The notes below the pieces were generated by a model. That model saw nothing but the letters and a program-made list of their open reading frames with translations, was not told the DNA's origin and did not search any database. A program made the translations under genes and the position numbers. Below are positions 14,956-47,849 of a DNA stretch of 64,000 nt, piece by piece. Location: NCBI GenBank assembly GCA_020891255.1, contig BQFW01000004.1, positions 124,001 to 188,000 on the forward strand, written 5' to 3'. Source of the DNA: Entomortierella parvispora E1425 (lineage: Eukaryota; Fungi; Mortierellomycota). How positions within the stretch are numbered: position 1 is the stretch's first letter; the number at the start of each line of letters is the position of its first letter.

Positions 14956-17900
14956 ATGGCAGACTCGTACCATAAGCACCCCCCAGCTGCCATTGAGACT
15001 GCCAACTGGCTGTCCTACTTCTCATTCAACTGGATCCAGCCTCTGCTGATCAAAGGATGGGTAAGTTTTGGCCCATGACTGCCGTTGTGATTCCGACCGT
15101 TGGGAGAGACGGCAGACTGTTGGTCTCTGTCAAACCCAGGAAAAAAATTCAGAAAAAAGGGGAGACCCCACTTGATCCGATCTGTTGATCTGTTGGGTCG
15201 CTGGCTGTGCTGCGCACCTGTTTCCAATTGAGACGCCTATGATACTAACATCTGCTTCCTCCTCGCTTCCTCCCCTGCCTGCCTGCATCTTTTAGAGCCA
15301 ACCCATTGTCGAGATTGACCTGGACCAGCTCTCCAGGAACGACCACGTCAAGAGACTTACTGATCGACTTCTCCAAGAATGGACACGCGAGGTTGAGAAG
15401 AAACAGGCCAAGGCCAAGGCCACAGGGAAGGCCGCTGAACGCCCCAGCCTGTACCTCGTCCTCTTTCGCTGCTTCGGACTCTATTACAGTCTGTCGCTCT
15501 TTACCGGAGTCCTTGAGTCTGTCTGCAAGATCAGTGAAGCCATCCTCATGGGCTATGTTATCCGCTTCTTTGACAATACAGACATCCCCACGAGTCAGGG
15601 CATGACCTATGCAGTTGCCCTCTTCCTCGTCACTCTATTCCACGGCACCATGCATCATCACTACTTTTTCCCCACAATGCGAACAGGAATGTGGGTCCGT
15701 CAGAGTTTAATCTCGCTCATGTACCGAAAGTGTTTAACTCTTTCCACCTCAAGCTCAATTGCGACCGGCACTGTCGTCAATCTCATTTCTAATGGTAGGT
15801 TATCCTCTTTGTGTCAATTGATGAACTTGTCGACTTGACGTGAAACTAGCCTTTCTAATACTTCTTTTCCCTTTCGCCTCTATTTGCTATCATTAGATGT
15901 CCAACCTTTTGAGAACGCGACCCCCTTCATGCTCTATGCCCTGATTGGACCTGTCGAGATGGCCTTTGTAATGTATTTCCTGTGGAAAGAGATCGAGGTT
16001 GCCTGCCTGTCTGGATTGCTGGTCTTTGCCATCTTGATGCCAGTCCAGACATTCTTTTCTCGTCACTTCGCCACCATTCGAGGCAAGACTGTCAATGCCC
16101 GTGACGAACGTATCCGTACCCTCTCAGACGTCTTTTCCGGCATTGAGCTCGTCAAGCTCTGCGCTTGGGAGGTCCCCTTCCAAGAAAAAATCCTCATGCT
16201 CCGATCGATCGAGCTGGGTTACATCTGGAAGGCCAACATGATGCGTGCCAGTAACATGGCAATCTACTTCTTCTTCCAGCCCCTGATTGCCCTGTTTGTC
16301 TTTGTCACATATTGGCTTCAGGGAAAGACGTTGACGCCGGACAAGGTCTTTGTGTCGCTCACCTTGTTCAATGTGATGCGTCTGACCATGACGTCGTTCT
16401 TCCCTAAGGCCCTCGAGACGATTGCAGAGACCAGAGTCTCTGTCCGCCGTATCACCGACTTCATGCTCTTGCCTGAACTCATTGGAATTGAGAATGAATT
16501 CAAGACTGTGGAGGTGGATGACCTCAAGGAGAATGAAAAGATTGCCGCCAGCAAACTGTTGGACCCCTCTGTCTTGTTGGAAATGAGAGACGCCTCTTTC
16601 TCTTGGACAGTCACCTCGATTGGATCCAGCACGGCTCCAGAACCATCCTCCAAGGAGAAAGAACGCAAGTCTGAACTTGAATTGGCCCAAGAGGACAGCA
16701 GCGACAGCGACAACTTGACCATACACAGCCCCAAGAAGGCGATCCTCAACAATATCACCATGACTTTGCGTAAGGACGATCTGCTGGCGGTTGTTGGACC
16801 TGTCGGATGTGGAAAGTCGAGCTTCTGTATGGCGCTCCTTCAGGAAATGCCTTTGGTATCTGGATCGTTTGTCCTCGCGCATCAGGAAACCCAACGCGTC
16901 AGGATGTCTTACTCTGCTCAATCCCCATGGATCTTCGCCGGAACTATTCGAAGCAACATCTTGTTTGGATCGCAATTTGATCAAGCGCGCTATGACAGGG
17001 TCATCAAGGCCTGTGAGCTGACACGCGATCTCTCTTTGTTCCCCGAAGGAGATGACACCATCATTGGAGAAAAGGGAGTTACTTTGAGTGGTGGCCAGCG
17101 CGCCCGTGTATCGCTTGCCAGGGCCGCATACAGAGAATCGGATGTGTATATCCTGGACGACCCCTTGTCGGCTGTGGATCCCAAGGTTGGCCGTGCCCTC
17201 TTCGAGAACTGCATCAATGGACTGTTGAAGGACAAAGCTCGTATTTTGGTCACCCATCAACTTCAATACATCAAGGATTGCGAGAACGTCATTGTTCTGG
17301 AGCAAGGACAAGTTACCCATACTGGACGCGTGGACGATGTCATGCAAGAGGAAGTCGAGGTGGAAAAGTTGGTCGGCGATGGCGATTCTATCAGGAGCAT
17401 CAAGAAGCGCGCCAAATTTGTGGATGTGCTTCGCGAGTTTGCCAAGAAGGCGCCTGAAGCTACAGAGGATGAGGAAACTGTGGCGATCTTGAAAGCAGAG
17501 GAGTTGAACCAACCTATCCCTGAGGAAGTCCTGAAGCGTGTCAAGTCTCGCGCTGAGAGCGCAAAGGCTGAAGACGATGGTGATGTACCTGAGAAGAACC
17601 TGACCGTTGAAGAGGTGGCTAAGGGCGATACACCTGTGAAAGTTTACTATGACTTTTTCCGCCTTGGATCGACTCCCTTCCGACTCTGCTTGGCGGTCTT
17701 GTCATTGTCAGCCGCTCAAGCGATCAGTGTTTCAGGCGATTTCTTCCTGTCGAACTGGTCACAACTTTCAGAGACGGAGCAGAAGCGGTCTTATTACCCT
17801 ACGGTCTTTGGCGTCTATTGTCTCTCGACAGTGATCATGACGTTGATTCGTTCTTTCCTCTTCTTCTACTGCGTATCGGAAAGTTCGAAAAGTATCTTTA

Positions 17901-19525
17901 AGGCGATGCTGAACGCTTTGCTCAAGACTGGTATCGATTTCTTCCACGCCAACCCGCACGGCCGTGTCTTGAACCGATTCTCCAAGGACATGGCCAACTG
18001 CGACGAGCTGTTGCCGTATACCTTCTTTGATACAACTCAAATCGTGTTCATGTTGTTTGGATCGATTGTGGTCGTCTGCATCGTCAATTTATGGATCGTC
18101 ATTTCAATTCCATTCCTTATCGGTGGATTCATTGCATTGCGCGCAGTTTATCTCCGAACCAGTCGACAGGTCAAGCGTATCGACGGTCAGACTCGTTCCC
18201 CCATTTATTCTCAGCTCTCCGAGACTTTGGATGGATTGACATCTGTCCGTGCTTTTGGTGCTGGGGATCGCTTCATGGCACGTTTTGTAGATGCTCAAGA
18301 GGCCAACGGTCGTGCTTTCTTTGCGTACTTGATTTGCGCGCGTTGGCTGGGCTTCCGCCTTGACGCTCTCTCGGCTTTGTTTTTGGGCGTGACCGCCATT
18401 GCCTGTGTTGCTGTCAGGGATTCCCAAGAAGCCGCCTTGGTCGGACTGGCGCTCAGCTATGTCACTCAGCTCTCTGGAGAACTACAGTGGGCCGTCAGAC
18501 AGAGTGTCGAGGCTGCCATCTTAATGGTCTCTGTCGAACGTATGATGGAATACGCCAATGTGAAGCCTGAAGAGTCAGGTCGCCATCTCTTGAACCCAGA
18601 CGGGACCAGTGTTGTTCCTAACGGTTGGCCCATGGAAGCCAAGGTCACCTTCACGAACATGTCCTTGACCTACCCTCGCGGCGACGGTCCTGTCCTCAAG
18701 AACATCTCATTGGACTTTAGGGCTGGAGAGAAGATTGCCATCGTAGGTAGAACTGGAGCTGGCAAGTCAAGTCTGATTGGAGCTATCTTCCGACTTGTCG
18801 AAACCACAACCGGAAACCCTGCGCACAGAGGAGGAATTATAATTGATGGAATCGACATTAGCAAGATTGGTATGCACGATTTGCGTTCCAAGATGGCCAT
18901 TATTCCACAAGAGCCCTTCTTGTTCAGAGGCACACTTCGATTCAACCTCGACCCCACAGATCAACATCAGGATGCAGACATCTGGGCAGCCCTGGAGGCT
19001 GCGGAGCTCAAGCGACTCGTAGAGTCTTTGGAGGGCGGGTTGGATGCCGTTGTGGACGACAATGGCAAGAATTTCAGTATTGGTGAACGCCAATTGCTCT
19101 CTTTGGCACGCGCGGTGCTCAGACGGTCCAAGATCATTGTCATGGACGAAGCAACAGCGAACGTGGATTTGCAGTCGGATCGTATGATCCAAAAGGCGAT
19201 TCATAACCAGTTCAAGGACGCGACAGTGTTCACTATTGCCCATCGTCTCAACACTGTCATTGAAGGATACGATCGGATCCTGGTCTTGGATCAGGGTCAG
19301 GTCATGGAGTTTGACGATCCTTGGGTCCTCTTGAGCTGCCCCCCTGGAGAGGTTACACCTGCTGATGGATTGGGTGCCTTGGGACCAACACCTGGAGGTG
19401 GTCGCGGATGGCTGAGGAGGATGGTCGCAGACACCGGCGCAGAGAACGAGGCCATGCTGCGACAGGTTGCGAAGGAGCAGTGGGAGCGTCGCAACCCAGG
19501 CGCGGCCCCTCTTCCTAGCTTGTAA
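14956..19525 (+). CDS. ABCC (MRP4-like, no TMD0) ABC transporter, copy A, ~1,410 aa; exons 14956-15060, 15296-15794, 15897-19525
   Basis: N-terminal lasso motif (AxWLSYFSFNW) and TMD1-NBD1-TMD2-NBD2 layout. NBD1 has GPVGCGKSS, LSGGQ and VYILDD; NBD2 has GRTGAGKSS, degenerate FSIGE and IIVMDE. Confidence 0.95.
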
Positions 19526-19988: not shown

Positions 19989-22900
19989 ATGTCCGACTCT
20001 GAAGACATGCCCCTTGCCATTCGCAAGAAGAACGCCAACAATTCGAGTGGTAAGTAAACACTTGGCCAACCCCCCCCCCCCAGCCCACTTGTACTGACGG
20101 CAGCAGTACCCAGGACGGATGTTTGGCTCCCCCCTATCCAACTTCCAGCCCTTCACACTTCAAGGATAGGTCATGGCCACCCTTTTCCTCACTGCCGATC
20201 TGGTTGTACACACAGATACACACCTTTAAAATAACGCGAAAAGAGCTGTGAACAACCACAAAAAAGCGCGTTTCTGTAGTGTGCACTGTTCCGACTTCTG
20301 TTTTTCTTCTTTTTTTTTCTCTCTCTCTCTCTCTTTCTTTTTTCTTTCTGGTTCTTTGATGGCAACGCTCATCGGAGGATAGTTGGCAAGATCAGAAATG
20401 TGGACCTGTTTATTGTTTGTTCGGAGGGATAAGACTGCAACATGTGTGGTGTTTGCTGAGGAGAGAAAGAGGGAGGGAGTGAGTGAGGGAAATTGCTGTC
20501 GATGATTAAGGAATGGGGTGAATAACAGTAAAACACCACGTCTGACGACCAAGGGGAAAGACGACCACAGCTTCTTTGTTGACGACGACCAACCTTTTTT
20601 TGTGCAATTGTTTCGATCCACGCGGGCATTTGCAACTAAAGTGGTGCAGGGTCTGCAGTCCGTTGTGGAGAGAGTGACGGGGGACTGGAGTGGGGCAAAC
20701 GGGGTGAAGGCACAAAATCAGAGAACGTGGATATATCGTATGTGAGCGGCATGCTTGATCGATATGGTGGCAAAAATAGACCATCTCCACCCACTGGACA
20801 TGGGTGAATGGAGCGCCATTGGGGGGAGGGGAGATGGATTCAATGGCCACATGCAAAAGCATAATGACGATCTGTACTAACGACATCATCTTTTCTTCGT
20901 GTGTCGGCTAGACCACAGCGACAGCGACTCTGACGTCCCCCTCGGCAAGCGCAAAAGATCTGCAGCACGCCAAGTTATCAAGGACGATGATGAGGACGAT
21001 GAAAGCATCCAGAACAGTGGCAGCGACTCGGACAAGCCTCTCGTCAAGCGCACACGCCCTGCCGTCAGAAGGAAAACCTACCAGGAGGACGACGACAGTG
21101 ACGACGATGATGATGGCGACTACAACTCCAACCACAAAAACGGATCGGCATCTAAAAAGTCAAAAGACTCCAACTCCTCGGACTCGGATGTGGCTCTAGC
21201 AAAGAGGAAACCCACCACCAACGGGAATGGTGACGCAAAACGCACCAAGAGTGCCCCAAAATACAAAGAGGAATCCTCCGACTCTGATTCGGAAATGCCC
21301 TTGGTACGGAAACAAGTCGATCGTGCCGCTTCAGCCCGCTTTGACTTGACATGTCCCCATTTCTGATGTGGCCTCATCTAACGGAGTTTGTTTTTTTTTT
21401 CATTGCAACAGGCGAAGAAGGCTTCTGCCAAGAAGGAGGCTCCTGCCAAGAAGGCTGCCGCCAAAGTCAAGGTAGAATCTGGCTCATCTAAAACGAGCAA
21501 GTCAACTAGCAAGTCAACTAGCAATGGAAAGACCGCCACCTCGAAGAGTCGCGTCAAGAGTGAGCCTGAATCCGACACAAAGCCCAAGAAGCCCAAGAAG
21601 GAAGAAGAGGAGGAGGAGGACTTGAACGCTTGGTGGCTGAACCAGAACGAAAACGAGGACGACAGTGTAAAGTGGACGTCCCTCCATCACAACGGCGTCT
21701 TTTTCCCCCCTGAGTACATCCCTCATGGTGTCAAGATGAAGTATGAAGGTAAACCCAACCCTCCCTGAGTTTGCTGCAAATCAAAGTCTCTTCTGGTTAT
21801 CCCATTTGGCCTAGAATCTGACTGTGTGATTCTCTCTATTGTAGGCAAGGCCATTACGCTTGCTCCTGAGGTAGAGGAGGTCGCCTCCTTTTTCGGAGCC
21901 ATGTTGCACACTGAGCATGCTGAGAACCCAACCTTCCGGGAAAACTTCTTTAAGGACTTTTCAAAGCTTGCTAAGCGTCACAAGACTGTAAGGGCACCCC
22001 CTGTCAACATTTATAGTCGATTGCAATTGCGATCATGATCGGGTTTACATGGATGATACTCATTGGAGACCCCTCCTCATTTTGAATTATTAGGTCCCTG
22101 AGATCAAGTCCTTTTCCAAGTGCGACTTCACGCCCATGTATGAGTACTTCCAGGCTGAGAGAGAGATGAAGAAGAGCATGACTAAGGAGCAGAAGCAGTC
22201 TTTGAAGGAAGAAAAGTTGGCGCTGGAGGAGCAATACGGTATCTGTTATTTGGATGGACGCAAGGAGAAGGTCGGAAACTTCCGCATCGAACCTCCAGGT
22301 CTCTTCCGCGGTCGCGGAAAGCATCCCAAGACTGGTTGCCTCAAGGTATATTTTCTTGGATCGTATATGTGTAATCATTACGGCATTCATTGACGGACGA
22401 AAATACCAACTATTTTTTTTTTCCGTTTATAGCTTCGTGTCCAACCTGAGCAAGTGACTCTCAATTTGAGTAAGGATGCCCCTGTTCCCAAGGCGCCTGC
22501 TGGTCACAAGTGGGCCAAGATTGTTCACGACGACACAAAGACATGGTTGGCGACTTGGAAGGAAAACGTCAATGACTCGACCAAGTACGTCTTCTTGGCC
22601 GCTGGCAGTTCCTTGAAGGGTCAGTCCGATATGAAGAAGTTTGAGGTGGCTCGTCGTCTCAAGGGAGAGATTGAAGGAATCCGTCGTGGATACATGGCGG
22701 ATCTCAAGGACAAGAAGATGTTTATCCGTCAGCGTGCCACGGCAATGTACTTGATCGATCGATTGGCGCTCAGAGCCGGAAATGAGAAGGGCGAGGACGA
22801 GGCCGATACTGTGGGCTGCTGCTCCCTTCGATATGAGCATGTGACGCTGGAGAAGCCCGACATCATGCATCTCGACTTTTTGGGTAAGGATTCGATCCGA

Positions 22901-24040
22901 TTCCAGAAGGACATGAAGGTCGACGAGCAGGTCTTCAAGAACATTCGTCTCTTCAAGCGCGAGCCCGCTCAGGAAGGAGATGAACTCTTTGATCGCCTCA
23001 AGGTAACGCAAGTCGTTTTCCTTTTTTTTTTTTCTTTTCCGTTGTGAGGACTTGACTTGGTACTGACTTTTTTGGAATCTTCATGTTTTAGACCTCGGAG
23101 CTGAACAAGCATCTTCAGAATCTCATGCCCGGTCTTACTGCCAAGGTGTTCCGTACCTACAACGCTTCCTTCACTTTCCAGGATCAGTTGCAAAAGCTGA
23201 CCCCCGCCGACGGCACTGTAGCTGAAAAGCTCTTGGCTTACAACCGTGCCAACCGCGAAGTCGCCATTTTGTGTAACCATCAAAGGGCTGTCAGCAAGGG
23301 CCACGCTGGTCAAATGGAAAAGATTCAGGACAAGGTAAAGACGAACATCCCTCTTTTGGGAGGCATCTCCTACGTTATTTTAAGATTTTTGGAATGCTCC
23401 TTTTTTGCATACATACATGTATTCATTCTCTCTCTTTTTTTTTTTTTTTTTTTTTTTGTGGTAGATCCGCGCCCTCAAGTACCAAAAGTACAAGCTGAAG
23501 CGTACGATTTTGACGCTGGAGCCAAAGTTGAAGAAGAAGCGTCCTGAGTTTTTGGAGCCCGAGTCAGATCTGGAGGACAGCTGGATGGACGAGTATGAGG
23601 TTCAGCTGATGGCCAAGGAGAAGGAGAAGGTGACGCTGAAATGGGAGAAGGAGAACCAAAGGCGTAAGGAGAACAAGGAGAAGCCCCAGACAGAGAAGGA
23701 GTTGAAGGACATGTTGAAGGAGGTCGATGCCCGGGCCAAGGAATTGGCCAAGGAGCGGAAATCTGGAAATGTCCCTGGTGCCCGAGGCGCCACGGTCGAG
23801 AAGTGCGAGGCCCAACTCTTGAAGTTGGACGAGCGCATTGCGGCGACGCGCACGGCCATGACGGACAAGGATGAGAACAAGCAGACGGCCTTGGGAACGT
23901 CCAAGATCAACTACATTGACCCTCGTATCTCTACGGCCTGGTGTCAAAAGTACGATGTGCCTCTGGAAAAGATCTTTACAAAGATCTTGCGTGACAAGTT
24001 TAAGTGGGCCATGACCGTGGATCCTGACTGGGAGTTTTAA
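19989..24040 (+). CDS. TOP1: DNA topoisomerase I (type IB); exons 19989-20049, 20912-21303, 21412-21748, 21845-21987, 22094-22345, 22433-23002, 23092-23334, 23465-24040
   Basis: [48 protein letters not shown] and the catalytic GTSKINY motif. Lys/Ser/Asp-rich N-terminus. All GT-AG junctions are in phase. Confidence 0.97.
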
Positions 24041-24319: not shown

Positions 24320-27300
24320 CTACGGAGCAGGACCTCCACGCTGCTGGTATTGCTGCTGAGGTGGGTACTGCTGCTGCTGCTGATGTTGGAACTGGCCACT
24401 TTGTTGACGAGGGATTCCAAACTCGTCGAGGTCTGCAGAGGTATCATCAGAGTCATAAAACTCCTGAGTGGTTAGTGTTTTCTTGACCCAGATGATTGTC
24501 TCGCCATCGTGGACTTGTGGCAATGGGCCTGAGTAGCCAGCAGGGGTCTCGGTCACTGTGGTCGTGGCATTTGAAGAGACTTGGGCCTGGTTGACTGAGT
24601 AGGATGTCGACTGATGGGTGGTCGAGGCATCCATGCTTCCTGGAGTTTGGACCGAAGCATGAATTGGGGTCGTAGTTGTAGTTTGAACTGGGACGCTACC
24701 ACTGATCTGAGACCCAGGAGTGGTCGTGGTCGTGGTCCAAGTCCTATAGCCAGTCGTTGTTGTGCCAGTGGAGGGTTGCTGGGCGTGACCTTGCTGCTGA
24801 ACGGGCTGGTGGATCTGCTGCTGCGACTCTGCTTGTGGTGCGTAGTTCAAAGCGAGAGATGCTGCGACCGTTGGTGCAGATACATGTTGCTGGGGTTGAG
24901 CATGCGACTGCTGGTGAATCTGCTGCTGCTGCTGCTGCTGTTGAGATTGAGCGTGCGACTGCTGATTGATTTGTTGCTGTTGCTGCTGGGGTTGAACATG
25001 CGACTGGTGGTGGACCTGTTGCTGGGGCTGCTGGGGCTGAGCATTCGACTGCTGGGGGACCTGCTGCTGTTGCTGCTGGGGCTGAGCATCCGACAGCTGG
25101 TGGATCTGATGCTGCTGCTGCTGTTGCTGAGGTTGAGCACTCAACTGCTGGTGCTGATGATGGTGCTGACCTTGTGGGGAGGCTGGGTGAGCATCGTGAT
25201 ATTGCTGTGCATGCTCTCCGTATCCTTGAGAGGCAAGAGCAGAAGCCGAACCGATGCCAGAGAAAGCAGCGCCATGAGTCGATGGAACAGCTGACGATGG
25301 CTGGGGCTGGCCATAGCTGGAGACGCTCTGACTCGGCTGAGTAACATTATGAGTTGTTACAGGAGCTGTCGCGTGTACCTGAGTAGCGGTTGATGATACG
25401 TGTTGCTGCTGTTGTTGCTGCTGTTTCTCCATATGAAGCATATGACTGGTGCCGAGCGAGACCTCAGGCCCTAGAGGAAGAACTGAGATGGATTCCAACT
25501 TCCTATTCAAGATGGTGCCGCCAGCTGTGCTGTGCCCAACTGAGGTACCAGCGGGTGAGTCGTGGTGTTCTTGGGGGTGTTCAGGTACCAAGCCAGTCAT
25601 ATCTCGAAGATTGTGATCGCCGAGATGCACGCCAGCAACCGAACTCATAGCCATTGGAGCGTGCGACTGTGATGGAACATGACTGACTGGGGCATGGCTG
25701 GCAGGGGCATGACTCTGAGATGGGCCAGAAGTCTCTTCATGCTCTGTAGAGTGCAAGGAGAAGGTATCATTGTCGGTAGTTCATGTCAGTGACCAGAGAG
25801 GGGTAATCGTTTACAAATATCAAAAATGACATATCCACTTACGGCCGTAGTAAGCATCTCCACGATGATGACCAAGGTTCATGGGTACTGGCATTGCGCG
25901 TGCTGAGGAATTGGGCGCGTGGGTTGAGATGTGGGTGGACCCAGTTTCTAAGAGTTTTACAGCAATCACACAGGAATGGATACAGTTAATACGAGCACTC
26001 TACAAAAAAAAGATTGGATCTTCAACTTACGGCCGTAGTACGACTCCCCACGTGGACTGTAGGTGTCACCGTGAGGAACAGGAGCAGGAGCGTGCGTGTG
26101 TGACTGATTCTGTGGTTGCTGGTGCTGGTGCTGAGGCTGGTGATGTGGCTGGCGATGTGGCTGGTGCTGCTGGGCATGGTGCTGCGACTCTGGCAAAAGG
26201 TCGGCCATATGAGGGAGGTGAACATTACCGAGCATGGCTCTAACGCCTACAACACCAGAAGCAATCGCGGCAGCCGCACTCTCGGCTACAGTTTCAGCCA
26301 TCTCTGCCGCAGATTCGGCCATCGCCACGGCCGTTTCTGTGATGGTCGGGTGCAAATCATGATGTGGGTGCAATTCTGAAGCCTGAACCTCGCGTGCATC
26401 AACTACGTGCGAAGGATGGGCGGGATTCTGGTGAGGATGACCCTCATCCGAACGAGGGTAGGAGCCATCTTCCTCTGGATACAATCCTAGTTTGGCTTGT
26501 GGGTGCTTCAATCCAACGGCCTTGGAGTGGTTGTAAGAGTGTTCACGAGCTTGGTGAATTGGGGCAGCATGCTGAGAGTGAGGAACGTAGACTGCTGCAG
26601 AGGTATGGGGAGCGGCATGTTGATCGCCGCGATGCAATGACCGAGAACCTCCCTGTCCTGATAATGTTGAACCGACGGGCAGCTCAGTGACATTCATGAC
26701 GCTCTTTGGATGATCTGGGTTCTCATGGTGAGAAACTTCCCCTCGAGAATAATACTCGGACTCTTCGGGATAGAGTCCTGCATGACTCTTGGTCATCGAG
26801 GAAGAATGGACCGCGTGAGGCTGAGGTGCCACTGGACGGCTGCGTCTGCCACTTTGCTGAGGCACCACTGCGAGGGTGGGTGCGCTCAAGTGAGCTGCAT
26901 GCACTCGGCGCTGCGTCTGATGATGTTGCTGCTGCTCATGATGGTCATAGTGCTGCTGCTGTTCACGCTGGTCATACCGCTGTTGCTGGTGCTGCTGGTC
27001 ATAGCGCTGCTGCTGATGCTGCTGGTCATAGCGCTGTTGCTGGTGCTGCTGGTCATAGCGCTGTTGATGGTACTGCTGGTCATAGCGCTGTTGCTGATAC
27101 TGCTGGTCATGGCGCTGTCGCTGATTCTGCTGGTCATAGCGCTGTTGCTGGTACTGCTGGTCATAACGCTGTTGCTGGTGCTGCCGCCCATGTTGGCTGT
27201 GGTGCTGCTCAGAGTTGCTGGGATACTGCTGTGACTGGTCGTGTCGGAACAGACGAGAGGATAACTGATGATATCCCACACCAGCAGAGTCTTCATGAGC

Positions 27301-30300
27301 GTATCCAGAGCTTGAGCCTTGGTGAGGGAGAGACATTGGTGAAGAATCTGCGTAAGAGCTGATGTGGCGAGAACCACGCGAAGCATGAGAGTCATGAGCC
27401 CCCTGGTGACGCGAAGGATGATAAGGGATCTCAATGACATCCATGTAAGAGTGAGGGTAGCTTGGGTTCTCATGCTCAACAGGACCACCGCGGGGATAGG
27501 AGGGATCTTCCTCAGGGAACAACGTCAAGTCGGCACTAGGACGCTTCAAGGTCACTGCTTTCGAGCGTCCATGCTGCAAAGAGTGTCCAGCTGCAGAAGA
27601 GTGACCATGAGCCGAGGCATTGCGGCTATGAGCTTTGCTCTCGTCGTATATAGCATGGGCTACCAAGGATGGCACGTGCAAAGTAGCCCCGACGATAGAA
27701 TGGACACCGTTCAAGGCAGTTCCAGCCAAGGGTAGACCTTTGGATGAACTCTGCTGCGAATAGGATGCAGGTTCGACAAATAACTCATTCAGGTGAAAAT
27801 CGGGAGTAGAATCAGGTCGACTTCCAAAGGCAGATCGCACAGTGTCAGTCGTACTTAAGCGACGAGGAGCCTCACGAGAAATGGATTGTCCTTTCTCCCT
27901 CTTCGCCTCCTTCTTCATTTGCCTGTTGTTTGGTGTGTTGACATGACCAGAGTGAGAATGGACTCCATGTTGAGGGTTGTGATTCTCGACAGAGGCGTGG
28001 TGGTGATACAGATGGTCCTCGTTCTCGCGATGAACAATTGCAGCCGTCATGTAAGGGTTGACATGCTGGCGCAGAGGTGTGACACTAGAGTGCACTGGAC
28101 CGGTGTTTCCGAGAGAAGAACCGGATCCTTGCGACGAGTACGGATAAGACGCAGTATGCAAACCACCAGCATGCGAACCCTGCATATCTGGCATTGGTGG
28201 ATGGGTTGGCTCCTCATGGGGTCTTCCTAAGACTTGATGCGATCGCTCTTGATAAGAATCCTCGTGCAATGGAGCACGACCCAAAGGAGCCTGTTTGCGC
28301 CTCGAGTTGATATGAATGGAGGAAACTGGAGTGGAAGGGCCTGAGGCGTGACTAAGATGGCCTTCAGCTCTGGCGGCCTCTCTCATCTCGGATATGGAAA
28401 TTCCTGGAGGTTGATGAGTGCCGGCGCTTGAGGTTGGGGAATGGTACGCTTTGTGGATGGTCTCGTAGTGCATAGTCGTGTGCTCAACTCGGTCATGCTG
28501 AGCCTGAGCACGAGAGACAGCGGCATGGTAAACAGGGATATGTCGAGTAGAGCTTTCAGCGGCAACGGCACCAAAGGGGACGCCGCCATTCTCGTCCTCG
28601 AGATACTCGATCCGCCCTGTGTACCTGCTGTCTCGAGGAGGCTGATCGATACCAATTGTATTCTCCTGAGCCCTCTCCACATAGTCATCTGAGAGATAAC
28701 TCAAGTGAGAAATCTTCGATCCACCACTGCGGGATTGAGGGTAACCCGAATGGGAGTGACCATGGGTTTTGTGGATGAACTTTGAGGCGTCAAACACGTA
28801 TCCCTATTACACAATCGTTATTTGGTTAGAAGATTACTCAAGTGGGGGGTTTTTTTTCAGTTTTCGCCTCGGAACTTACATTGAAGTCGTCCTTTTGAGG
28901 ATGAGAAGACCTCGAGAAACTAGTCTTGCTTCCATGATGGACGTGACTCTCGTCATGGTCACTGCAGTAGTCATCGTCGCATCGGTGGCGATGGTGATCA
29001 TGATGATCTGCAGCATCCTGCTCATAACGGTAATGCTGTAGCTTGGTCTCATAACGAGCAGGAACATCATGGGCATGCCCAGAGATGGCCATTCTGTGGC
29101 TGCCATTTGTGCCGTGGTCGTCCTGTCCATGAGTTCCAATATGTCCAGTGAACGTGCATTGATGGCTATTACTCTCCCCTCCACCTGCCTGTTCGCCGAC
29201 ATAGAGAGCCCCAAGATTAAGTTCGGGTGAACCTGAAGAATCTTGGCGGTGAGATGCACGGATCACATTATGTCGTGGATGCGTTGGCGCGTGTCGTTGA
29301 TGACTTTGATGTGGCTGAGAGCGACTCTGATTCGATGCACGGTTTGATGAACGGTTCTAGACACAAAGAATGATTTCGTTAGACGTTTTCGCGGTTTGCC
29401 AGCTCTATCCACATGCAACATGTACTCACCAGACTCTGCCCTTGACGGTGACCAGTATGCTTGACGGCCTCTGCATATGTAAAGGAGCCAAAATGGCTGG
29501 ATCCTGGGGCTTTATCGAAAAATGCCCCAATGTTCAACTGAGGCGAATCGGACTCGTACTGCGATGCATCTCCACGAGCCCAACCTTGACTGGAAGAATG
29601 AGCGGGCTGCCCATAATGAACGTGACTCTCATCATGATCGCTGCAATACTCATCGTCGCATTGGTGGCGATGATGGTTGTGGTGGTCAGTTGGGTCATGT
29701 TCATAATGACGGTGCGAGATCTTGTAGCGATCACGATGATCTGGAACGGCAATGGCATGATGACCGTGAGAGTCTCCCCGGTGTATATTCAGTACGTGTT
29801 GGTCGACTTCAACATTTCGTTGTTGCTGAGGCATATGGTAGTACAAGTTGTTGCTGTCGTAGTTTGCACCATGAGGATAGGGGTGTCCTTTGGCATCGTA
29901 GCCCAGTTGCTTTTCATGTACAGGGTGATGATGCGCATGAGGATCTTCATTCTCGCGTATGTCAATGTCATAGTCAAAGTGCTTTTCTGCCGGTCGAAGA
30001 CTATGAGCGGGCTTGTGACCATGGTGACCAACGCTTCTGTCCTTGTGCTCGTGTGCGTCCTCATGTTGGGCTGGCTCATGTCCACTATGGGCACGGTTGC
30101 CTGTGCGCTCCGTCTCAGTGGAGAGCGATCCAAGGTTCATTTCGGGAGAGTGATCATGGTGGTCCGCTGGGTCCTGACTGTGATGGTCATGGGTGATTTT
30201 GTAAGAGTCTCGGTTGTCTGGCACATCAATGGCATGATGACCATGGGAATTTCCTCGCATCTTGTTATGCAGCTGCTCTTCCCTATGGAGCGAGTCCTCG

Positions 30301-33300
30301 TCGTACTCATACGACTCCGACTCTTGTTGGTGCGATTTCGATCTGCTTGGAGTCTCTTTGAACAGTGGTCCAAGATTCAACTCTGTAGAATCGGTCGAGG
30401 CACGGGAGTGCTGAGAACGAACATGATGAAGGATAATAAACGCGTAAATATCAATAGGACCTATCAATTTTAGATGCTAGAAGACAATTGATGCAACATA
30501 CCTTCGCAGGAGTGCCATGATGGTCGTTCTTCACAGCAGCGGAATAGGTGAAGGCCTTAGATACCGAATGTGGTGCTGTGGCCTTGTGTGGAATCCATCT
30601 CGATTGCCTGTTCTCTTGGAAGACAGAACCCAGACTCACATCTGGAGACCTCTGTGATGCATGAGAGTGACGCGATTGCAAGTCGAATCTCTGAGCCTGG
30701 GTGCTGTATGTCATTCGACCACGCCCGCCTTGGATGCCTTGAGGGTAATGGATATGGCTGTCATCATGGTCACTGCAATCTTCATCGTCACACTGGTGAC
30801 GGTGGTGATCATGATGATCGGTAGGATCATGATCGTAATGATGATGGGCAATCTTGTAATGGTCTCTATTATCAGGAACAGCAATAGCATGATGGCCACG
30901 ATCGGGATGTGCAGCTTGTTGATGGGTCTTGTTGGGCTCGACAGAATGTGAAACAAGAGCCTTTGGCGCTGGGCTAACTTTCGAAGAATACTCGTGGCTG
31001 ACATGACGGGCCGCGTGTGAAGCGTGATGATGAGCATGAACATCTTCGCTTTCGCGCAAGTTTGTGTCATAATCCCAATGCTTGTCGACAGGAGCCGGTG
31101 CATAGGCAGGCTTGTGGCCACGGTGACCCACACTTCTGTTCAAATGCTGATTGTGCTCGTCCTCCTCGTCATGATGCATCAGCCGCTGCGAGTGAGCTGA
31201 TCTTGCTGGGGCTTGAGAATGGTGGGTGCCAGTAGGATGGACCAGATGGGCTGGCGCACTGAGTGGATCAACGTGGTGCTGCTGAGAAGAGGCCTTCTGG
31301 CTCTTCTTTCCTGGGCCACCTGAAGAATCCATATCGGTGAACAAGGTACCCTGGCTCAACTCCTCTCGGCGTGCGTGATGAGCATGGACGGCAGCGTGCG
31401 ACTTGTGAATAGCAGTGTGTTGCTGTTGATGGTGCTGCCGCTGCTGCCGCTGCTGCTGCTTGGCCTTGGTGGCGTGAACACTGACATGGTGGTGGTGCGA
31501 AGACTCGTAGTCAGGATGCTCGGAGCGCGCCATATCGTCAAACTGGTGAGTCGGTTTATGGCCGCGGTGACCGAGACTTCGATCCAAGTGCTCGCGGTGC
31601 TCGCCATCTTGATGGTGGTACATACCTCGTCCTCCCTTCGAATTTGTAGATGAAGGCGGATTGAGGAGAAGAGATCCCAAGTTCATAAAAGGCGCGTTGA
31701 AATGATCTTCATGTGGTGAGAACTCATTATCCGAGTCGAAAACATCATCAAACAGGGCGGACTCTCGGCGCCTTTGACTTCCACCGCTGCTCGCCTTCTG
31801 ATCGTACTGGTGGCCCTGAAGAGTGGGAGGAGTAGCAGATCCATGCTTCTGCTGCTCAGAGTGCGCCATATCGCCAAACTGGTAAGTCGGTTTATGGCCG
31901 CGGTGACCGACACCTCGATCCAAGTGCTCGCGATGCCTGTCATCTTCATGGTGGTACATACCTCGTCCTCCCTTCGAATATATAGATGAAGGCGAATTGA
32001 GGAGAAGAGATCCCAAATTCATAAAAGGCGCGTTGAAATGATTTTCATGTGGTGAGAACTCATGATCCGAGTCGAAAACATCATCAAACAGGGCGGACTC
32101 TCGGCGCCTTTGACTTCCACCGCTGCTCGCCTTCTGATCGTACTGGTGGCCCTGAAGAGTGGCATGAGTAGCAGACCCATGCTTCTGCTGTGTAGCTGGA
32201 TGAATCGAGTGGGCTGGGGCATTGAAGGCGCCATTGTGATGGCTGCTAGCGCGTGCACTGAATTGTTTCTTGCTGGCATTCAGCTCTGGGGATTCCTCAC
32301 GAGTGTGACGAGCGTGAGTCGATCGAAGAATGGCACGCCGATGATGCTCTGGGGCTGCAGCTAGATGACGATGGGGCGACACATATCCTTCGGGATGGAA
32401 GTGCTGGTGACTACCGTCATGGTCGGTACAATATTCATCATCACATTGGTGTCTGTGATGATTATGATGGTCCCAAGGCTCGCCATGCTCGTAATGTTTG
32501 ATTTTGACCGGTCGGTGTGCAGGAACAGCAATTGCATGATGTCCATGTGAATTTCCTCGTCTCTTGTTGACCAAATGTTGCTCCAAATGTCGCTGTTCTA
32601 CCTCCATATCCAGGTGCTGGTCAACATGGTAGTGGCCTTGATTTTTCCTTCCCTTCTGCTCCTTGAGCATGACTTCCAGATGAAGAGCCGGGAAGTTTTT
32701 AGCAGGATGAGAATGCTTGGGGTGAAAAGCGGCTTCGTGACCTTGAGAATTCCTGTGGGTGGGGACGTGGACTCGATCATGTTCTCTGCTTTGGATGAGA
32801 TGTGCTGCCTTCGCAGCGGTTGTTTGAGAACCTGAACCGTGCGACTTTGCTCCACTACCAGATGCTGAGGCGTGTTGACTCACAGAATGAATCAAGTGGG
32901 CAGGAGCACTGAATGGCTCGGCCTCATGGGAGGCATGGCTTAGGGAAGACTTGGCCGACTTCTGCTTGGATGCCTTTTGGGTCCCATTTTGAGTCTCTGC
33001 AAAGAGAGACCCGGCTTCAAGTTCTGGAGATGCGGTCCTGACATTGCCTTGCGAGTGCTTGATAGCCGTAGGTCGATCGGAAGATTCTGCCATTGAGCTG
33101 GTCTTGCCGCCTTTGCCTTGAACTTGCCAGCTGTCGTAGGCGCCCGTGGATTTGTGCGTTTGAGCCGAGTAGATCAGGACAGGATGGTGGAATTCATGTT
33201 GATGGTGAATAGGCTCCTTTTGTCCGGCATTTGCGCTACTTTGCCTGGGCTTTGAAGCCTGGCTGCCAGTAGGCTCCTTGGATAACTGGTCCAAGTGCAT

Positions 33301-35036
33301 CTCTGGGGTTGCCATGCCAGACGTGTGATGAGGATGGCTGGCATGGACAGCTGCATGGGACTTGTGGATCGCAGACTGAGATTGATGTATACCATGAGAA
33401 TAGCTGCTGGTCTTATCAGAGAGATGCTCGTGGCTATCGTCATGGTCACTGCAGTAGTCATTGTCGCACTGGTGACGATGATGATCGTGGTGGTCGGTTG
33501 GATCGTGTTCATAGTGATGATGATGGATCTTGTAATGGTCTCGGTTATGAGGCACGGCATGGGCATGGCCCTCCAAGGCGCGATGACTGTGGCTCTGCTG
33601 TCCTTGATGGGAGATACGGGTGCGCTTCTTTTTTCCGCTCACAATTGACCAACCTTGATCGTCATCCGTCAAAAGATGTGAGCCGCCATGGTCCTTGTGT
33701 GATGAAGAGCCAGCAGGATGGGTGAGATGAGCAGGGGTGTTGAAAGGATCGGCGAGATGCTGGGAAGCGGCCTTCTGACTCTTCTTTCCTGAGCCACCTG
33801 AAGGATTCATATCGATGCCCAAGGTACCCGGGTTCAACTCTGGCGACTCTTCTCGGCGAGCGTGATGAGCATGGATGGCAGCGTGCGACTTGTGAACATC
33901 ACTGTATTGCTGCTGCTGGTTGTTTTGCTGTTGATACTGCTGTTGTTGATACTGCTGTTGTTGATACTGTTGCTGCTGCTGGTGCTGAGGTTTGGCCTTG
34001 GCGGAATGAACACTGACATGGTGGCTGTGCGAAGAGTCGTAGTCAGAATGCTCAGAGTGCGCCATATCGTCAACCTGGTGAGCCGGTTGATGTACGCGGC
34101 GGCCAACACTTTGGTCCAAGTGCTCGTGGTGCTCGTCATCCTCATCATAATGCACCGGCCGCTGAGAACGAGGTGATCTTGGGGCCTGAGTTTGATGCCA
34201 TCCAGCCTGATGAATCAAATGAACAGGGGCGTTGAAAGTGTCGACAACGTGGCGATGTTTCGATGCTGAGGTAGTCTTCATAGCAGATGCGCGTCCTGAA
34301 CTGGCGGAGGGAGTGTCGGGGAACAGAGTGCCCAAGTTGAGTTCGGACGAGTAATCGCGCTCATAGTTCTGAGATGATCTCACTGCTGAATGTCTAGCGT
34401 GCACTGGAGTTTGGTGCTGCTGCTGCTGCTGACGATGATGATGAGAATGCTGACCGGCATTATAGAGATGTTCATGGCTATCGTCATGATCACTGCAGTC
34501 TTCGTCATCGCATTGGTGGCGATGATGGTCATGGTGATCCGTCGGGTCGTGCTCGTAGTGTTGGTGTGCAATCTTGTACGAGTCTCTGTTGTCAGGGACA
34601 GCGCGTGCATGGTGTCCGTGGGAGTCTACTGAGTTCGATGAGGCTCCGCGCGATGCCTGTGACAACGGCAACTTGGCAGTCGAGTGCGATTCCTTGAGAT
34701 GGGCGTTTGCACCATGAGTCTGAAGAGCTGGGGCGTTGAAAGGTTGAGCAGAGCGAATGGTGTCCTTCTGTCCCGCATTTCCCCCACGCTGCTCCATGTT
34801 TGAAGACCGGCCGCTGTTAGGCTCAATAAACAACTGGTCCAAATGCCTCTCGGGGGTGGCAACTCCTGAGGTGTGGTGGACATGGCCAGCCGCGTGAATA
34901 TGAGATCCACCACGTTTCTGGCGAACTGTCGGCTTTGCAAAGAAGGATGGGTTGATGTCAAAGGTGGATGAACTGCGAGTATAGGCAATGGGCACCAGTA
35001 GTTTAGTCTCTGTTTGCCTTTTCTTCTCCCCATTGG

Positions 35037-35067
<31 letters not shown>

Positions 35068-36917: not shown

Positions 36918-37771
36918 ATGTTGAGCTCAGACTCGGGATCGTCTGACCTCTCCGATGCCGCGTCCTTGTCCTCGGACAACTCCTTAGGCTCTGGTTCTGA
37001 GGATGACCACCGCACTGTGAAGGTCAAGATGAGGACTCAGGCGTCTTCTTCTATTCCTCCAAAGACCTCTACCTCTGCGCCATTAGGGGCTAAGCAACAG
37101 GCCACTCGGACTGCCCGGGGCCACTCCTTTTCCTCCTCAGACTCGGGCGATTCGAGCGATCCTAGCTCCTCTGACCTCGACGACGATGAGAACGGTGGAC
37201 ATGGAAAGAGACCTCCAAATCACCTTCGCGCCAGTAAAAAATACCCCTCTACAAAAAGCAAGGACAAAAAAGACAAGCGGGCACAGGTTCAGCCTCCAGG
37301 AAACGCCCCTATATCGCTCTCAGCCTCTCAGCCAGTTTACTCGCAAGATATCATAACAGCCACCACGTCAGCCATTGCCTCCCGAGGCATTTCCACTCCT
37401 AGCCGCGGCCGTGGTCGTGGCCGTGGAAGGGCGCCTTTGGCTGGCCATGGATCGCGCAAGTACGACGCATCTGGTGCAACCGTGATCGACTTTGAGGACT
37501 CCTCTCAACAGGACATCCCCCCTTTAAACTCGACTGTATCTACACAACAGACAACGACAGCTCCCGCCACTCCAGCACGCAGCAAGAAGGAACAGTCGAT
37601 TGAAAGAACCAAGACAGCCAAGCCTTCAAAAGCAGGCACCAGTAAACCTAAAGCAGGAGCTCGCAAAGCTGGTCGACCCAAAACTGTCTCCAAAGACGTG
37701 TACTGCATATGCCGAGGGCCTTACGATGGTGTTGAGTTTATGATTGCTTGCGACCGATGCGAAGGTACAAA

Positions 37772-37807
<36 letters not shown>

Positions 37808-44995: not shown

Positions 44996-46241
44996 CCATG
45001 ATCCAAAGGGTCTAAAAGAAAATTCTTTGTGTGTTGTCCCTTACGTCCAAATGACCCACTGGCCACGTCCTGACGTTCCCTCCCTTCCCCTCACACACAC
45101 TGCTTCTTTTTCTCTTTTTCTCTCTCTTGCTCGCTCTCTTTTTCTTTCTCTAACTCTCTTTCTCTCTCCTTCACCTTTCTTCCTTCTTTCCCCTCGTAAT
45201 TCCTTTCCTCCCCACTCACCATCTTTCACTCTTTAAATTTTGTCAAAACCCTTTGATCCTTTGCAGCTAACGCTTTGACGCGTGATCCTCCGGCCAAAGG
45301 CAAGAAGCGAACGTAAGTTGAGCCTCTTCGGCTATGGTTATTTTGCTTCATCGCTCCATCTTGTTTTGACCCTTTTGTATTTTCCTCGGGGACGGAGAAA
45401 GTTGGGAGGAGAGATAAAAGAAAAGACCGCCGTGCAATGCCGATCCCCCTGTCCAGCTCAGTGTGGTTCGAGGAGTTAAGGAATCACAATATCTTCTTTC
45501 CTGTACTTTGGTGAAGATCCAGTTCTTATTGTACACCTCTGAATATGAAGTGGGAATACATTACCCTCCCTTTTCTCCCGCATCTAATCCTTTTTTGTCT
45601 TGGTATCCGTCCATCCCACTACTCTTTCCAGTCGTTTCCTTGACTCCCAACGCACGATCCCACATCGCGTATCCTCCCTCTTCCTCCGTCTCCCTCCCAC
45701 CCCCCACAATCCTTCTTGCACCTCCCGCACTACTTGCCATTTTTCAACAAGCCTGCCTTCCCTGATGCCTCTCTCTCTGTCTCTCTCTGTCTCTCTTTCT
45801 CTCTCTCTCTCTCTCTGTCTCCCCCTCTCCTATTCTCACTTCCGTCGGCCCCTAGTTCGGCAAGATCAACGCCTCGCGTCAAACATGTCAAACAATTGGA
45901 GAATGAGCAACAACGGCGACTATTCATCAACAACAAGATTTGGGAACTTGGTGATCTCTTGCCAAATATCCCGGCCAAGGCGCGATTTGACAAGGCCGGG
46001 AACAAGAAGCCTCTGACAAAGATTCTGATCTTGGGACGCGCCATTGAATTTGTTTTGTATGCAAAGGCTAATTTCCCGGCTATTCTATTGCACTACAAAC
46101 GCGAAATGGATATTGAACAGATGGAAGAGGACGATTCCAAGGGAGATTCTAGCTCCTCTATTGTTGGTGAACAAAGACAGGGTGGTCTAGACCTTCATGA
46201 TCCGCCAACACAGCAGCAGCAACAACAACAACAACCTCGGG

Positions 46242-46300
<59 letters not shown>

Positions 46301-47849
46301 AAGGCAAAAAAGAAAACTTGTCGTCCAAAAGCACCATCGCCGCCCACACAACCACATGTTGCGGCTCCCTCTGTGTCTCCTTTCCCACAGTCGGGCTCAC
46401 CGTCCCATATACCCTCTCCTGAGTCTTTGTTGTCAAGGAATCAGGTGCCAGCCAGCAGGATGGAAGAAACGGAGAGAGGCGTGGACGAGACGACGGTGAA
46501 TAAAAAAAAGGCGAGAAAATCAGTGGAGTTGTTGCGGGTAGGCTCCGACAGAGATATCCCAAGAGGCGGCAGTGGATCCAAGGTCGCCAGTGGGTCCTGT
46601 TCACCTTCACCCTCCAATAGTCAAGCTACGCGACCCTCCCCTTCCTTGTCGCTTTCACCTGCACTTCATCCAAGTGTTCGAGTGCCAAGGTGCTCCGCTT
46701 CACTGGCACTTCTTGGAGATCAGAATAGGATTGATCCGGGACTGCAATCTACCGCGGTGAATGTTCAGGACATACCGCCTTGGATGACAATGGATAACAC
46801 AACCACCTGTAAGAAGTGCCGCCGCTGGGAAGAAACAAGGCGGTTCTTATTCAACGATTGAATCCGTTCTGACTTTAATTTTTTTTTTTTTTTTTTTTGA
46901 TATCTTGTAAACTTCAGCCTCAACTCCTTGTCAAACCCCTCCGATTTGGCAGCCCTTGGAGACAATGGAAATCACTTCTGAATACCAATTCAGGACTGGC
47001 CTTCCAGTTTGCGGATCTAACAAGAGGGCTAGCTGCGATAATAGCTCGATGGGAATTGGATCTCCGGGAGGAGGAGGAGGAGGAGCAGGAGCAGGAGGAA
47101 TAGTGGGACAACTGCGAACGAACGAGACTATTTTCGGGAGTGACAGCAGTGACATTAGCAGTGGAGATCATGAACAGTTCCTTTACAGCAAAAGTAACCC
47201 CTCAGGACCCATGCTCATCGGGGATGCTCGGCCAATTCAATTGAGCTCGGCTCCCACCCCTATATCAAATATCTCAACCATGGCAATACACCAACACCAT
47301 CATTACCCCCACCTCACGACGACGATGGGCCTCTCGAGCCAGCCGAGCCAGCAGCGACCGTCGATGCCCATGGGGCGTGGCTATACCTTTGACGGGGTCA
47401 TATCTTCGATCCCAATGAGGAATGTGAGCAACAACGCGTCCTTGACGCAGCTTGTCGACGTCGACCCCAGCCAACTGGACAAGCCCCACTCTTTTGCACC
47501 AGTTTTTAGTCCACTTGCAGGAATCCCCCCCTCGACTCAGCGACAAGGAATGCAGGCCATCGTTCTACCTTCGTCCACTCCTTTCCCCTTTCAGCAGCAC
47601 CAGCAGCATCCACAACAGCAGCAGCAGCAACTGCACCCGCAACAACTGCACCATCGGCCACCACCGCATGTACATCAAGGACCGTACCAACATTATCAGC
47701 TGCAACATGTCCAACTCCAACAAACTGAATTTGCATTGCAAACGCCGACGGAGATAAGTCCATCTGATATGAATTTTCAGTACATGGTGCAGATCCAGAA
47801 CCAGCTTGGACTGCAACACCACCACCAACAGCAGCAACAGCAGCAGCAA

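Follow-up and report, generated by a model that had tools for sequence, protein, structure and literature searches.

Histidine-rich glycoprotein, with its GHHPH repeats, and Plasmodium HRP2, with its AHHAHHAAD repeats, bind Zn2+ or haem via repeated His. A locus of Entomortierella parvispora, within a 64,000-nucleotide stretch of DNA that was analysed as a whole (the window), encodes a module that likewise forms repeated His-rich units with no stable fold and shares similar local strings (G-H-H-A-H-A, G-H-R-G-H-K-P). Whereas the repeats of the two known proteins are contiguous, secreted, defined by composition and only 5-9 residues long, the module spans 52-58 residues, keeps certain non-His positions constant, carries a Cys pair and is separated from the next copy by a spacer of 150-500 residues. 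Profile, PDB and Pfam searches gave no homology between them. Very high His content with a few Cys and acidic residues is also found in Hpn, Hpn-like and the His-rich tails of HypB, UreE and SlyD, and the analogy of a low-structure, multi-ion binder applies. These bacterial proteins are small and poorly conserved in pattern, whereas the module is eukaryotic, conserved in its positions and repeated within a protein of 3,648 aa; no homology was detected by profile or Pfam.

The sarcoplasmic reticulum histidine-rich Ca-binding protein offers a third likeness, being a long disordered protein in which a basic His run followed by an acidic stretch (in the module, H-H-R-H and D-D-E-D ... D-H-D-D) is repeated. 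In contrast to the module, it is lumenal, binds Ca via its acidic runs and has no counterpart of the Cys pair or of the A-x-A-V-P half; the module family has no Pfam match. Two Cys and two His within ∼11 residues, potentially forming one tetrahedral site, recall small zinc knuckles and C2H2 fingers, but the spacing differs, there is no hydrophobic core, predicted secondary structure or profile match, and 37 of the 97 family-wide instances have another residue in place of the first Cys. Plant dehydrins and His-rich LEA proteins, in which His-rich stretches are reported as metal-binding, are disordered and carry recurrent conserved short segments. This likeness is architectural only; they are much smaller, are built from K, Y and S segments and have no homology to the host protein.

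The host gene and its module array

Six complete modules were located by pattern search of the minus-strand translation, which also contains one partial module, and all belong to one single gene rather than to separate units. The features are as follows, with module coordinates including flanks.

36040 to 24320, minus strand: 10-exon host gene (ATG at 36040, stop at 24322-24320; CDS of 10,947 nt; protein of 3,648 aa)
36040-35788, 35693-35426, 35339-35280, 35202-35068 and 34972-30502, minus strand: exons 1-5
30410-29430, 29356-28880, 28803-26031, 25947-25843 and 25743-24320, minus strand: exons 6-10
34459..34632, minus strand: Module 1, aa 353-410, complete with C-x4-C, profile score 94.8 bits
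33415..33588, minus strand: Module 2, aa 701-758, complete with C-x4-C, profile score 88.2 bits
32392..32565, minus strand: Module 3, aa 1042-1099, complete
31517..32190, minus strand: two tandem in-frame copies of a spacer unit (2 x 336 nt) that are 94% identical, a recent duplication
30739..30912, minus strand: Module 4, aa 1593-1650, complete; the counterpart stretch in Gryganskiella is degenerate
30144..30257, minus strand: truncated module, aa 1781-1818, retaining the N-terminal half and D-H-H-D-H
29607..29780, minus strand: Module 5, aa 1940-1997, complete, in exon 6, profile score 99.0 bits
28928..29101, minus strand: Module 6, aa 2142-2199, complete, in exon 7, the most divergent copy

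The nine introns are each 73-99 nt and all GT-AG, and the joined exons form a single open frame with a lone stop at the end. Alignments showed orthologs to be collinear with the host protein from N to C terminus. The clean spliced frame and this collinearity rule out several small genes in place of one.

Inspection of the host protein, which is single-copy in E. parvispora, revealed a His content of 12.7% and, from charge and hydropathy, predicted disorder. Neither a transmembrane segment nor a signal peptide nor any hydrophobic stretch is present, the 19-residue Kyte-Doolittle window reaching at most 1.46. The lack of the latter two ruled out a Kex2-processed repeat precursor, which had been considered on account of K-R-R-G before several modules. 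The modules lie in the central part and account for 9.5% of the length, and 12 of the 13 Cys of the whole protein fall in module pairs (binomial P = 6.7e-12). At least four further short motifs recur: S-P-E-L-N-L-G-x-L-F, P-F-N-A-P-A-H-L-I-H, H-L-x-R-S-V-G-H-R-G-H-K-P and Y-T-Y-A-E-A-V. The duplicated 336-nt spacer unit encodes 112 aa with F-N-A-P, N-L-G-S-L and G-H-R-G-H-K-P motifs and without a module. Modeling of the N-terminal region with AlphaFold2 yielded no fold (pLDDT 50), and when the first 190 residues of the closest ortholog were compared with the ESM Atlas, the best look-alike scored 0.59, below the meaningful level. The host protein is an undescribed giant scaffold, predicted to be disordered, with at least five repeated short-motif classes, notable whatever its relation to metals.

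Each of the six copies scored 81-99 bits against the profile. Identity to the first copy ranged across them from 53 to 78%, and 22 columns, among them the two Cys, D-H-H-x-H-H-R-H and C-x-D-H-D, did not vary at all. With flanks (56-58 residues), a copy contains 13-18 His, 2 Cys and 8-15 Asp plus Glu. The profile scores and the confinement of Cys place the six-copy pattern far beyond chance. An initial annotation of this DNA had listed six copies and a Cys-less partial; all were recovered where it had placed them, on the minus strand, which it had left out. In the truncated module, the Cys-bearing half has been deleted, so that an S-P-E-M-N-L-G motif follows at once; in Gryganskiella, the corresponding module is whole.

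Conservation, age and distribution of the module

Because two-fold codons dominate the modules and pS exceeded 0.75, Nei-Gojobori dS was not computable, and synonymous codon differences were counted instead. Synonymous choice differed at 51% of the same-amino-acid codons between copies, and nucleotide identity was 55-70%. Saturation of synonymous sites alongside 22 invariant residues implies that the copies are old and that the module is under purifying selection. In comparison with the Gryganskiella ortholog, identity was 60% in the modules versus 44% in the rest of the protein. These values agree with the earlier view of a real unit under selection in which the motif persists while spacers diverge. 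Modules 3 and 6 resembled the modules at the same position in orthologs more than they did their paralogs: the E-P-W signature of Module 3 recurs at that position in Gryganskiella and in Mortierella sp. AD094, and the nearest kin of Module 6 are the last modules of the proteins P0013 and P0014 rather than copies in the same protein. Modules 1, 2, 4 and 5 were more alike within the species than to their Gryganskiella counterparts.

A database search with a profile of the six copies, as the initial annotation had proposed, retrieved only 19 matching proteins out of 1.84 billion; all named ones were from Mortierellaceae, and all 19 were the same Mortierellaceae protein. Protein and module thus both appear, from the sequences searched, to be found only in this family. 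Collinear N- and C-terminal motifs and conserved neighbours define an unnamed orthologous group of giant His-rich proteins, to which alignments and synteny assign the host protein, and which includes BGZ83_007250, BGZ81_007619, BGZ95_001717, EC968_004908 and others. The shared N-terminal motifs are M-R-V..S-E-F-R-V-A..G-G and P-K-E-F-V-Y-R-E-E-D-F-Q-P-L, and those at the C terminus are H-S-K-A-V-T-L-K, L-Y-P-E-E..Y-P-R and G-E-T-I-x-W-x-K. The motif is kept in at least five genera, and genera differ in how many modules they carry, from 0 to 8; zero were found in the syntenic Mortierella alpina ortholog, which implies that the array is dispensable for the core role of the protein.

The neighbours of the host gene in the window include an ABCC transporter, topoisomerase I, a PHD-type gene and a bHLH gene. 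In Gryganskiella, a PHD-domain gene lies upstream of the ortholog, and the window has a PHD-like ORF in the corresponding place; M. alpina and the window both have Top1 and the ABCC transporter on the downstream side. A metal-gene cluster was rejected, as the synteny is conserved yet the neighbours give no specific metal link. A literature search covering Mortierella, fungal disordered His-rich zinc-linked proteins and the host species found neither module nor protein, and returned only desaturase His-boxes, general reviews and a genome announcement (PMC8759367).

The family-wide core reads G-H-H-A-x-A-V-P-x-H-R ... K ... P-x-D-H-H-N/D-H-x-R-H-Q-C-D-x-E-x-C-x-D-H-x-x-S-H-x-H. Among 97 instances, the best-kept residues were H5 (92), A6, A8, V9, P10, D29 (92), H31 (95), H33 (94), R35 and Q37. 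The mean content of 79 complete instances over 52 positions was 12.6 His, 1.7 Cys and 8.9 Asp plus Glu. Retention of the Cys was lower, at 60 of 97 for the first and 71 of 97 for the second. The C-x4-C that had been called invariant is so in the six host copies, in Entomortierella, in Gryganskiella and in most Podila copies, but not across the family, the pair being gone from many Linnemannia and Mortierella copies; the expectation that the Cys would be conserved in orthologs was therefore borne out only in part.

Structure prediction and comparison with known families

Pfam searches with the large exons, a single module and 86 module instances gave no family at E<0.1, the matches at E>=0.1 being chance hits to unrelated models. 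A sequence profile search of the PDB returned zero chains at E<=10, and the best ESM Atlas look-alike of the module scored 0.75, below the meaningful level. AlphaFold2, supplied with an 86-sequence alignment, predicted neither a fold nor secondary structure for the module (pLDDT 61, pTM 0.15). An intermediate pLDDT without secondary structure is the expectation for a conditionally folding segment. By Pfam, PDB and profile searches, the module matches no described family.

Superficially, a Cys pair with nearby His resembles a CCHH or CCHC finger, and the His-rich-then-acidic layout is like that of the sarcoplasmic Ca-binding repeats. That the module is a diverged member of the zinc finger, metallothionein or histidine-rich calcium-binding families is nevertheless barely credible, given the empty Pfam and PDB searches and the restriction of all 19 profile matches to one Mortierellaceae protein. 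The order H-x-C-x4-C-x2-H fits neither a C2H2 finger (C-x2-4-C-x12-H-x3-5-H, beta-beta-alpha), since the His stands 2 rather than 12 residues past the second Cys, nor a CCHC knuckle (C-x2-C-x4-H-x4-C). Metallothioneins are small, with ∼15-30% Cys in C-x-C or C-x-x-C clusters and few or no His. By contrast, 3.4% of the module is Cys (2 of 58 residues), it contains 13-18 His, and its host has 3,648 aa. No match to the Pfam Hist_rich_Ca-bd repeat model, on which membership would depend, was obtained. The absence of any known Pfam or solved-structure match, together with spacing and composition, upholds the earlier description of the module as unlike classical zinc fingers or metallothioneins. With His at or above ∼25% of the unit, the module has the composition of the His-rich metal-binding repeats, a functional class and not a homology family, and would be a candidate member.

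Putative metal coordination and alternative explanations

The preferred mechanism is a putative one, which composition and conservation make plausible: that each module coordinates divalent transition-metal ions, most plausibly of the zinc type, and that the 6-8 units act as a metal buffer or metal-switched scaffold. We consider this an even prospect. A compact site would be formed by H36, C38, C43 and H46 (H-x-C-x4-C-x2-H), and flanking His/Asp clusters (D-H-H-x-H-H, S-H-x-H, G-H-H) would take additional ions. The module would be disordered alone, ordering or cross-linking only on metal binding, and the six to eight units would supply the multivalency of the buffer or switch. Counted in favour of this model were the confinement of Cys to module pairs, the gene model and composition, the saturated synonymous sites, the excess of module identity over the rest of the protein, the retention of H31, H33, D29 and H5, the mean His, Cys and acidic content, the proximity of Modules 3 and 6 to their positional orthologs, the intermediate pLDDT without secondary structure, and the His that often adjoins a lost first Cys. 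Counted against it were the loss of the Cys pair in many Linnemannia and Mortierella copies, the failure of AlphaFold2 to find a fold with 86 sequences and the module-free M. alpina ortholog, and these same three results weaken the original reading of the locus. Any peptide with ∼25% His binds Zn, Ni or Cu in vitro, so little is shown by composition alone. A metal-dependent mini-domain of a new kind, in which a multi-ion His/Cys/Asp cluster folds or cross-links only when loaded and the protein serves as a Mortierellaceae-specific metal-switchable scaffold or high-capacity cytosolic zinc/copper store tunable by copy number, is speculative and must be judged unlikely.

The non-ligand residues A6, A8, V9, P10, R35, Q37 and K17 are kept as strongly as the His. 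Such conservation speaks for a partner protein or an enzyme that recognises the module, and against chelation as the whole explanation. The module could accordingly be a composite short linear docking or modification motif that needs no metal, its His conferring pH-dependent binding or scaffold condensation. The A-x-A-V-P, R-H-Q and K positions, the stringing of at least five recurrent short-motif classes in disordered sequence, the missing fold of module and N-terminal region, the dispensability of Cys in many instances and the absence of the entire array from M. alpina are all consistent with docking. Nevertheless, no partner is known, and a ligand density of 12.6 His and 8.9 acidic residues per 52 positions, with a near-invariant D-x-H-x-H and a Cys pair comprising almost all Cys of the protein, is far above that usual for such motifs; on balance, docking is possible but on the unlikely side. 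Neutral low-complexity His/Asp expansion, in which functionless copies are alike through recent duplication or gene conversion, would suit a gene that does grow by tandem duplication, a module number of 0 to 8 and the closeness of Modules 1, 2, 4 and 5 to each other. It is largely refuted, and very improbable, because the copies are old, with about half of the same-residue codons differing, and yet hold 22 residues invariant, because the same motif occurs in at least five genera and because modules are better conserved than the remaining protein.

If defined metal binding were true, the module would add to the eukaryotic repertoire a type of site that is dominated by His yet fixed in its positions, with zinc knuckles on one side of it and compositional poly-His binders on the other. 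A natural experiment would then also be at hand: among closely related soil fungi that can be cultured, one syntenic gene has anywhere from 0 to 8 copies, and copy number could be compared with metal tolerance, ionome or stress phenotypes. The protein is conserved in Mortierellaceae, which are abundant soil fungi with industrial lipid use. If metal were bound merely as by any poly-His peptide, the finding would shrink to a lineage-specific repeat of unassigned role.

A His just after the first-Cys position was present in 21 instances, 20 of which lacked the first Cys (P-H in 14, S-H in 4, L-H in 1 and F-H in 1, with C-H in the remaining 1). Copies without the first Cys thus usually have His as the next residue, which would fit a ligand swap. 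Replacement of Cys by Pro together with that of the neighbouring Asp by His was probably a single inherited event and not repeated covariation.

A giant gene carrying six module copies

A search of the minus-strand translation with the pattern H-[RK]-H-x-C-x4-C-x2-H-D returned six matches, each behind a His/Asp-rich stretch. These copies and a Cys-less partial one lie where the initial annotation had placed them, on the minus strand, which it had left unstated.

Module copies in the window (modules 1-6 with flanks, from the pattern search)
34459-34632, minus, module 1
33415-33588, minus, module 2
32392-32565, minus, module 3, with an E-P-W signature
30739-30912, minus, module 4
29607-29780, minus, module 5
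28928-29101, minus, module 6
30144-30257, minus, truncated Cys-less copy

Alignment of the six copies revealed 53-78% identity to the first and 22 invariant columns, including both Cys residues, D-H-H-x-H-H-R-H, and C-x-D-H-D. Each copy contains 13-18 His, 2 Cys, and 8-15 acidic residues.

The copies are spread over four different open frames connected by canonical fungal introns (GTAAGT/GTATGT/GTGAGT...YAG, 73-99 nt). In silico splicing of ten exons, beginning with the ATG at 36040 and ending with the stop codon at 24322-24320, yielded an open frame of 10,947 nt, interrupted by no stop before the terminal one, and a predicted product of 3,648 aa, a model that rests on the clean frame and on collinear orthologs. 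His accounts for 12.7% of the protein, Ser for 12.1%, and Gln for 9.7%, and only 17.5% of its residues are hydrophobic. Relative to the charge-hydropathy boundary, it falls on the side of natively unfolded proteins (0.364 vs 0.421). Given that all 19-residue windows have Kyte-Doolittle values ≤1.46, it contains no transmembrane segment or signal peptide. The module pairs supply 12 of its 13 Cys residues within 9.5% of its length (P = 6.7e-12).

Further short motifs are repeated in the protein, namely S-P-E-L-N-L-G-x-L-F, P-F-N-A-P-A-H-L-I-H, H-L-x-R-S-V-G-H-R-G-H-K-P, Y-T-Y-A-E-A-V, and L-Y-P-E-E-x-x-Y-P-R. At 31517-32190 (minus), exon 5 contains two tandem 336-nt copies, 94% identical, an in-frame duplication of a 112-aa unit with F-N-A-P, N-L-G-S-L, and G-H-R-G-H-K-P motifs; unit duplication is thus still enlarging the central region of the gene. 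Within exon 8, a 27-nt repeat occurs nine times at 26942-27184 (minus, 88% matches), giving an array of the nonapeptide Q-Q-R-Y-D-Q-Q-x-Q in the C-terminal half of the protein. Intron 4 contains, at 35037-35064 and immediately behind its GT donor, 28 consecutive A residues on the plus strand, which are T on the gene strand. The conserved stretch W-x-[IVL]-V-x-x-K-K-[KR]-R at aa ~680-692 (window ~33600-33650, minus), also present in Gryganskiella and Podila, resembles a putative nuclear localization signal.

Conservation and turnover of the module in Mortierellaceae

Because codons for the same amino acid differ between the six copies in 51% of cases, approximately the saturation value for two-fold codons, and nucleotide identity is 55-70%, the copies are old, their likeness not being maintained by recent duplication or conversion. 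Between the window and the Gryganskiella ortholog, identity is 60% in the modules and 44% over the remaining aligned protein. Together with the saturated synonymous differences and the 22 invariant columns, this bears out the earlier suggestion that the motif is under selection. Modules 3 and 6 resemble the modules at corresponding positions in other genera more closely than they do their own paralogs; modules 1, 2, 4, and 5 show greater similarity within the species and may therefore reflect some older homogenization or shared constraint. Turnover is also evident, as the truncated copy has a complete Gryganskiella counterpart and the Gryganskiella stretch matching module 4 is degenerate.

The profile search that the initial annotation had proposed, using the six copies, matched only 19 of 1.84 billion representative proteins at E≤1e-3, the named ones all from the Mortierellaceae genera Gryganskiella, Podila, Linnemannia, or Mortierella. 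Homologues of the central and C-terminal exons are likewise all unannotated Mortierellaceae "hypothetical proteins" with no Pfam domain on record. Matches within one genome are fragments of one gene, split across contigs or adjacent gene models, and the gene thus appears to be single-copy.

Across 97 module instances from 26 proteins, the best-kept positions were H5 (92), A6 (81), A8 (85), V9 (80), P10 (93), K17 (79), D29 (92), H31 (95), H33 (94), R35 (87), H36 (81), and Q37 (89). The C-x4-C pair, described earlier as invariant, is so in all six window copies but not across the family, where 60 of the 97 instances retain the first Cys and 71 the second. Linnemannia and several Mortierella species have a derived type, F-R-H-Q-P-H-D-E-N-C-G-E-H-H-D, in which Pro replaces the first Cys and the adjacent residue becomes His. 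The first Cys is absent from 20 of the 21 instances with this His, which would fit a Cys-to-His ligand swap, although loss and gain are probably one inherited event. In other copies, both Cys residues are gone.

The syntenic M. alpina ortholog, P0152 (1,227 aa, full-length), contains no module, and none was found in any frame of the surrounding 16.7 kb by a scan that recovers all six at the Gryganskiella locus. Given this absence and a copy number of 0 to 8 across the family, the array is a lineage-variable accessory feature rather than the protein's core. At residues ~190-215, where other genera have modules, P0152 carries an eight-His run followed by K-H-D-D-D and H-H-R-H, which could be a remnant of, or functional substitute for, the array. 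In P0005 from Linnemannia exigua (residues ~1040-1900), the module, Y-T-Y-A-E-A-V, and G-H-H-G-H-H-P recur with a regular ~200-residue period, a higher-order super-repeat of much greater regularity than the window's protein shows.

Possible roles of the module

The initial annotation regarded the repeat as a candidate new one, and unlike classical zinc fingers or metallothioneins. No Pfam family matched the exons, the module itself, or a single one of 86 instances; no PDB chain matched at E≤10, and the ESM Atlas gave no informative neighbours. The H-x-C-x4-C-x2-H spacing fits neither a C2H2 finger nor a CCHC knuckle, and 3.4% Cys rules out a metallothionein-like unit. The module is previously undescribed; that it belongs to a known family of finger, metallothionein, or Ca-binding type is largely excluded and is the least probable of the explanations weighed here. 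Scarcely more credible, and also largely excluded, is neutral expansion of His/Asp-rich sequence.

These analyses establish an old, selected, family-restricted module with ligand residues at very high density, housed in a giant protein for which disorder is predicted. The preferred reading, to which we give an even chance, is that the module would coordinate metal, because of its His/Asp density and positional conservation, the fact that almost every Cys belongs to one fixed pair, and the possible Cys-to-His replacement. H36, C38, C43, and H46 would form a small site flanked by His/Asp clusters, with the module disordered in the metal-free state. Metal binding is a reasonable interpretation of composition and conservation, weakened by the incomplete retention of the Cys pair, by the absence of the module from M. 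alpina, and by the lack of a predicted fold: AlphaFold2 with the 86-sequence alignment gave pLDDT 61 and pTM 0.15, the module proper being devoid of secondary structure, and the most conserved N-terminal region gave pLDDT 50 and no fold. The main rival, possible but distinctly less probable, casts the module as a composite motif for docking or modification, carried by a multivalent scaffold, with His residues conferring pH dependence; non-ligand residues are as strongly conserved, the module Cys can be lost, and the entire array is missing in M. alpina. The remaining probability falls to functions other than those considered.

Genomic neighbourhood

Neighbouring features in the window
15884-19525 and 22454-23047, plus, ABCC4-like transporter and topoisomerase I
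36918-37775, plus, divergent ORF next to the giant gene, with a C-terminal Cys/His pattern
45716-46861, plus, ORF with a helix-loop-helix DNA-binding domain (Pfam HLH, E = 1.2e-6)

The Entomortierella parvispora genome has been announced (PMC8759367). The ABCC-transporter ORF matches a protein of this species at 100% identity. Topoisomerase I and an ABCC transporter lie downstream of the M. alpina ortholog as in the window, and a PHD-domain gene lies upstream of the Gryganskiella ortholog, both supporting orthology by synteny. The order His-rich gene, Top1, ABCC recurs at the M. alpina locus, and the ABCC and His-rich genes share a contig in Gryganskiella, Podila clonocystis, P. humilis, and Mortierella sp. 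AD031; this neighbourhood is conserved synteny, with no functional link implied. The ORF piece at 36918-37775 had no Pfam match and ends in what looks like a PHD-finger-like Cys/His pattern interrupted by an intron; the Gryganskiella gene in the equivalent position has PF00628 (PHD).
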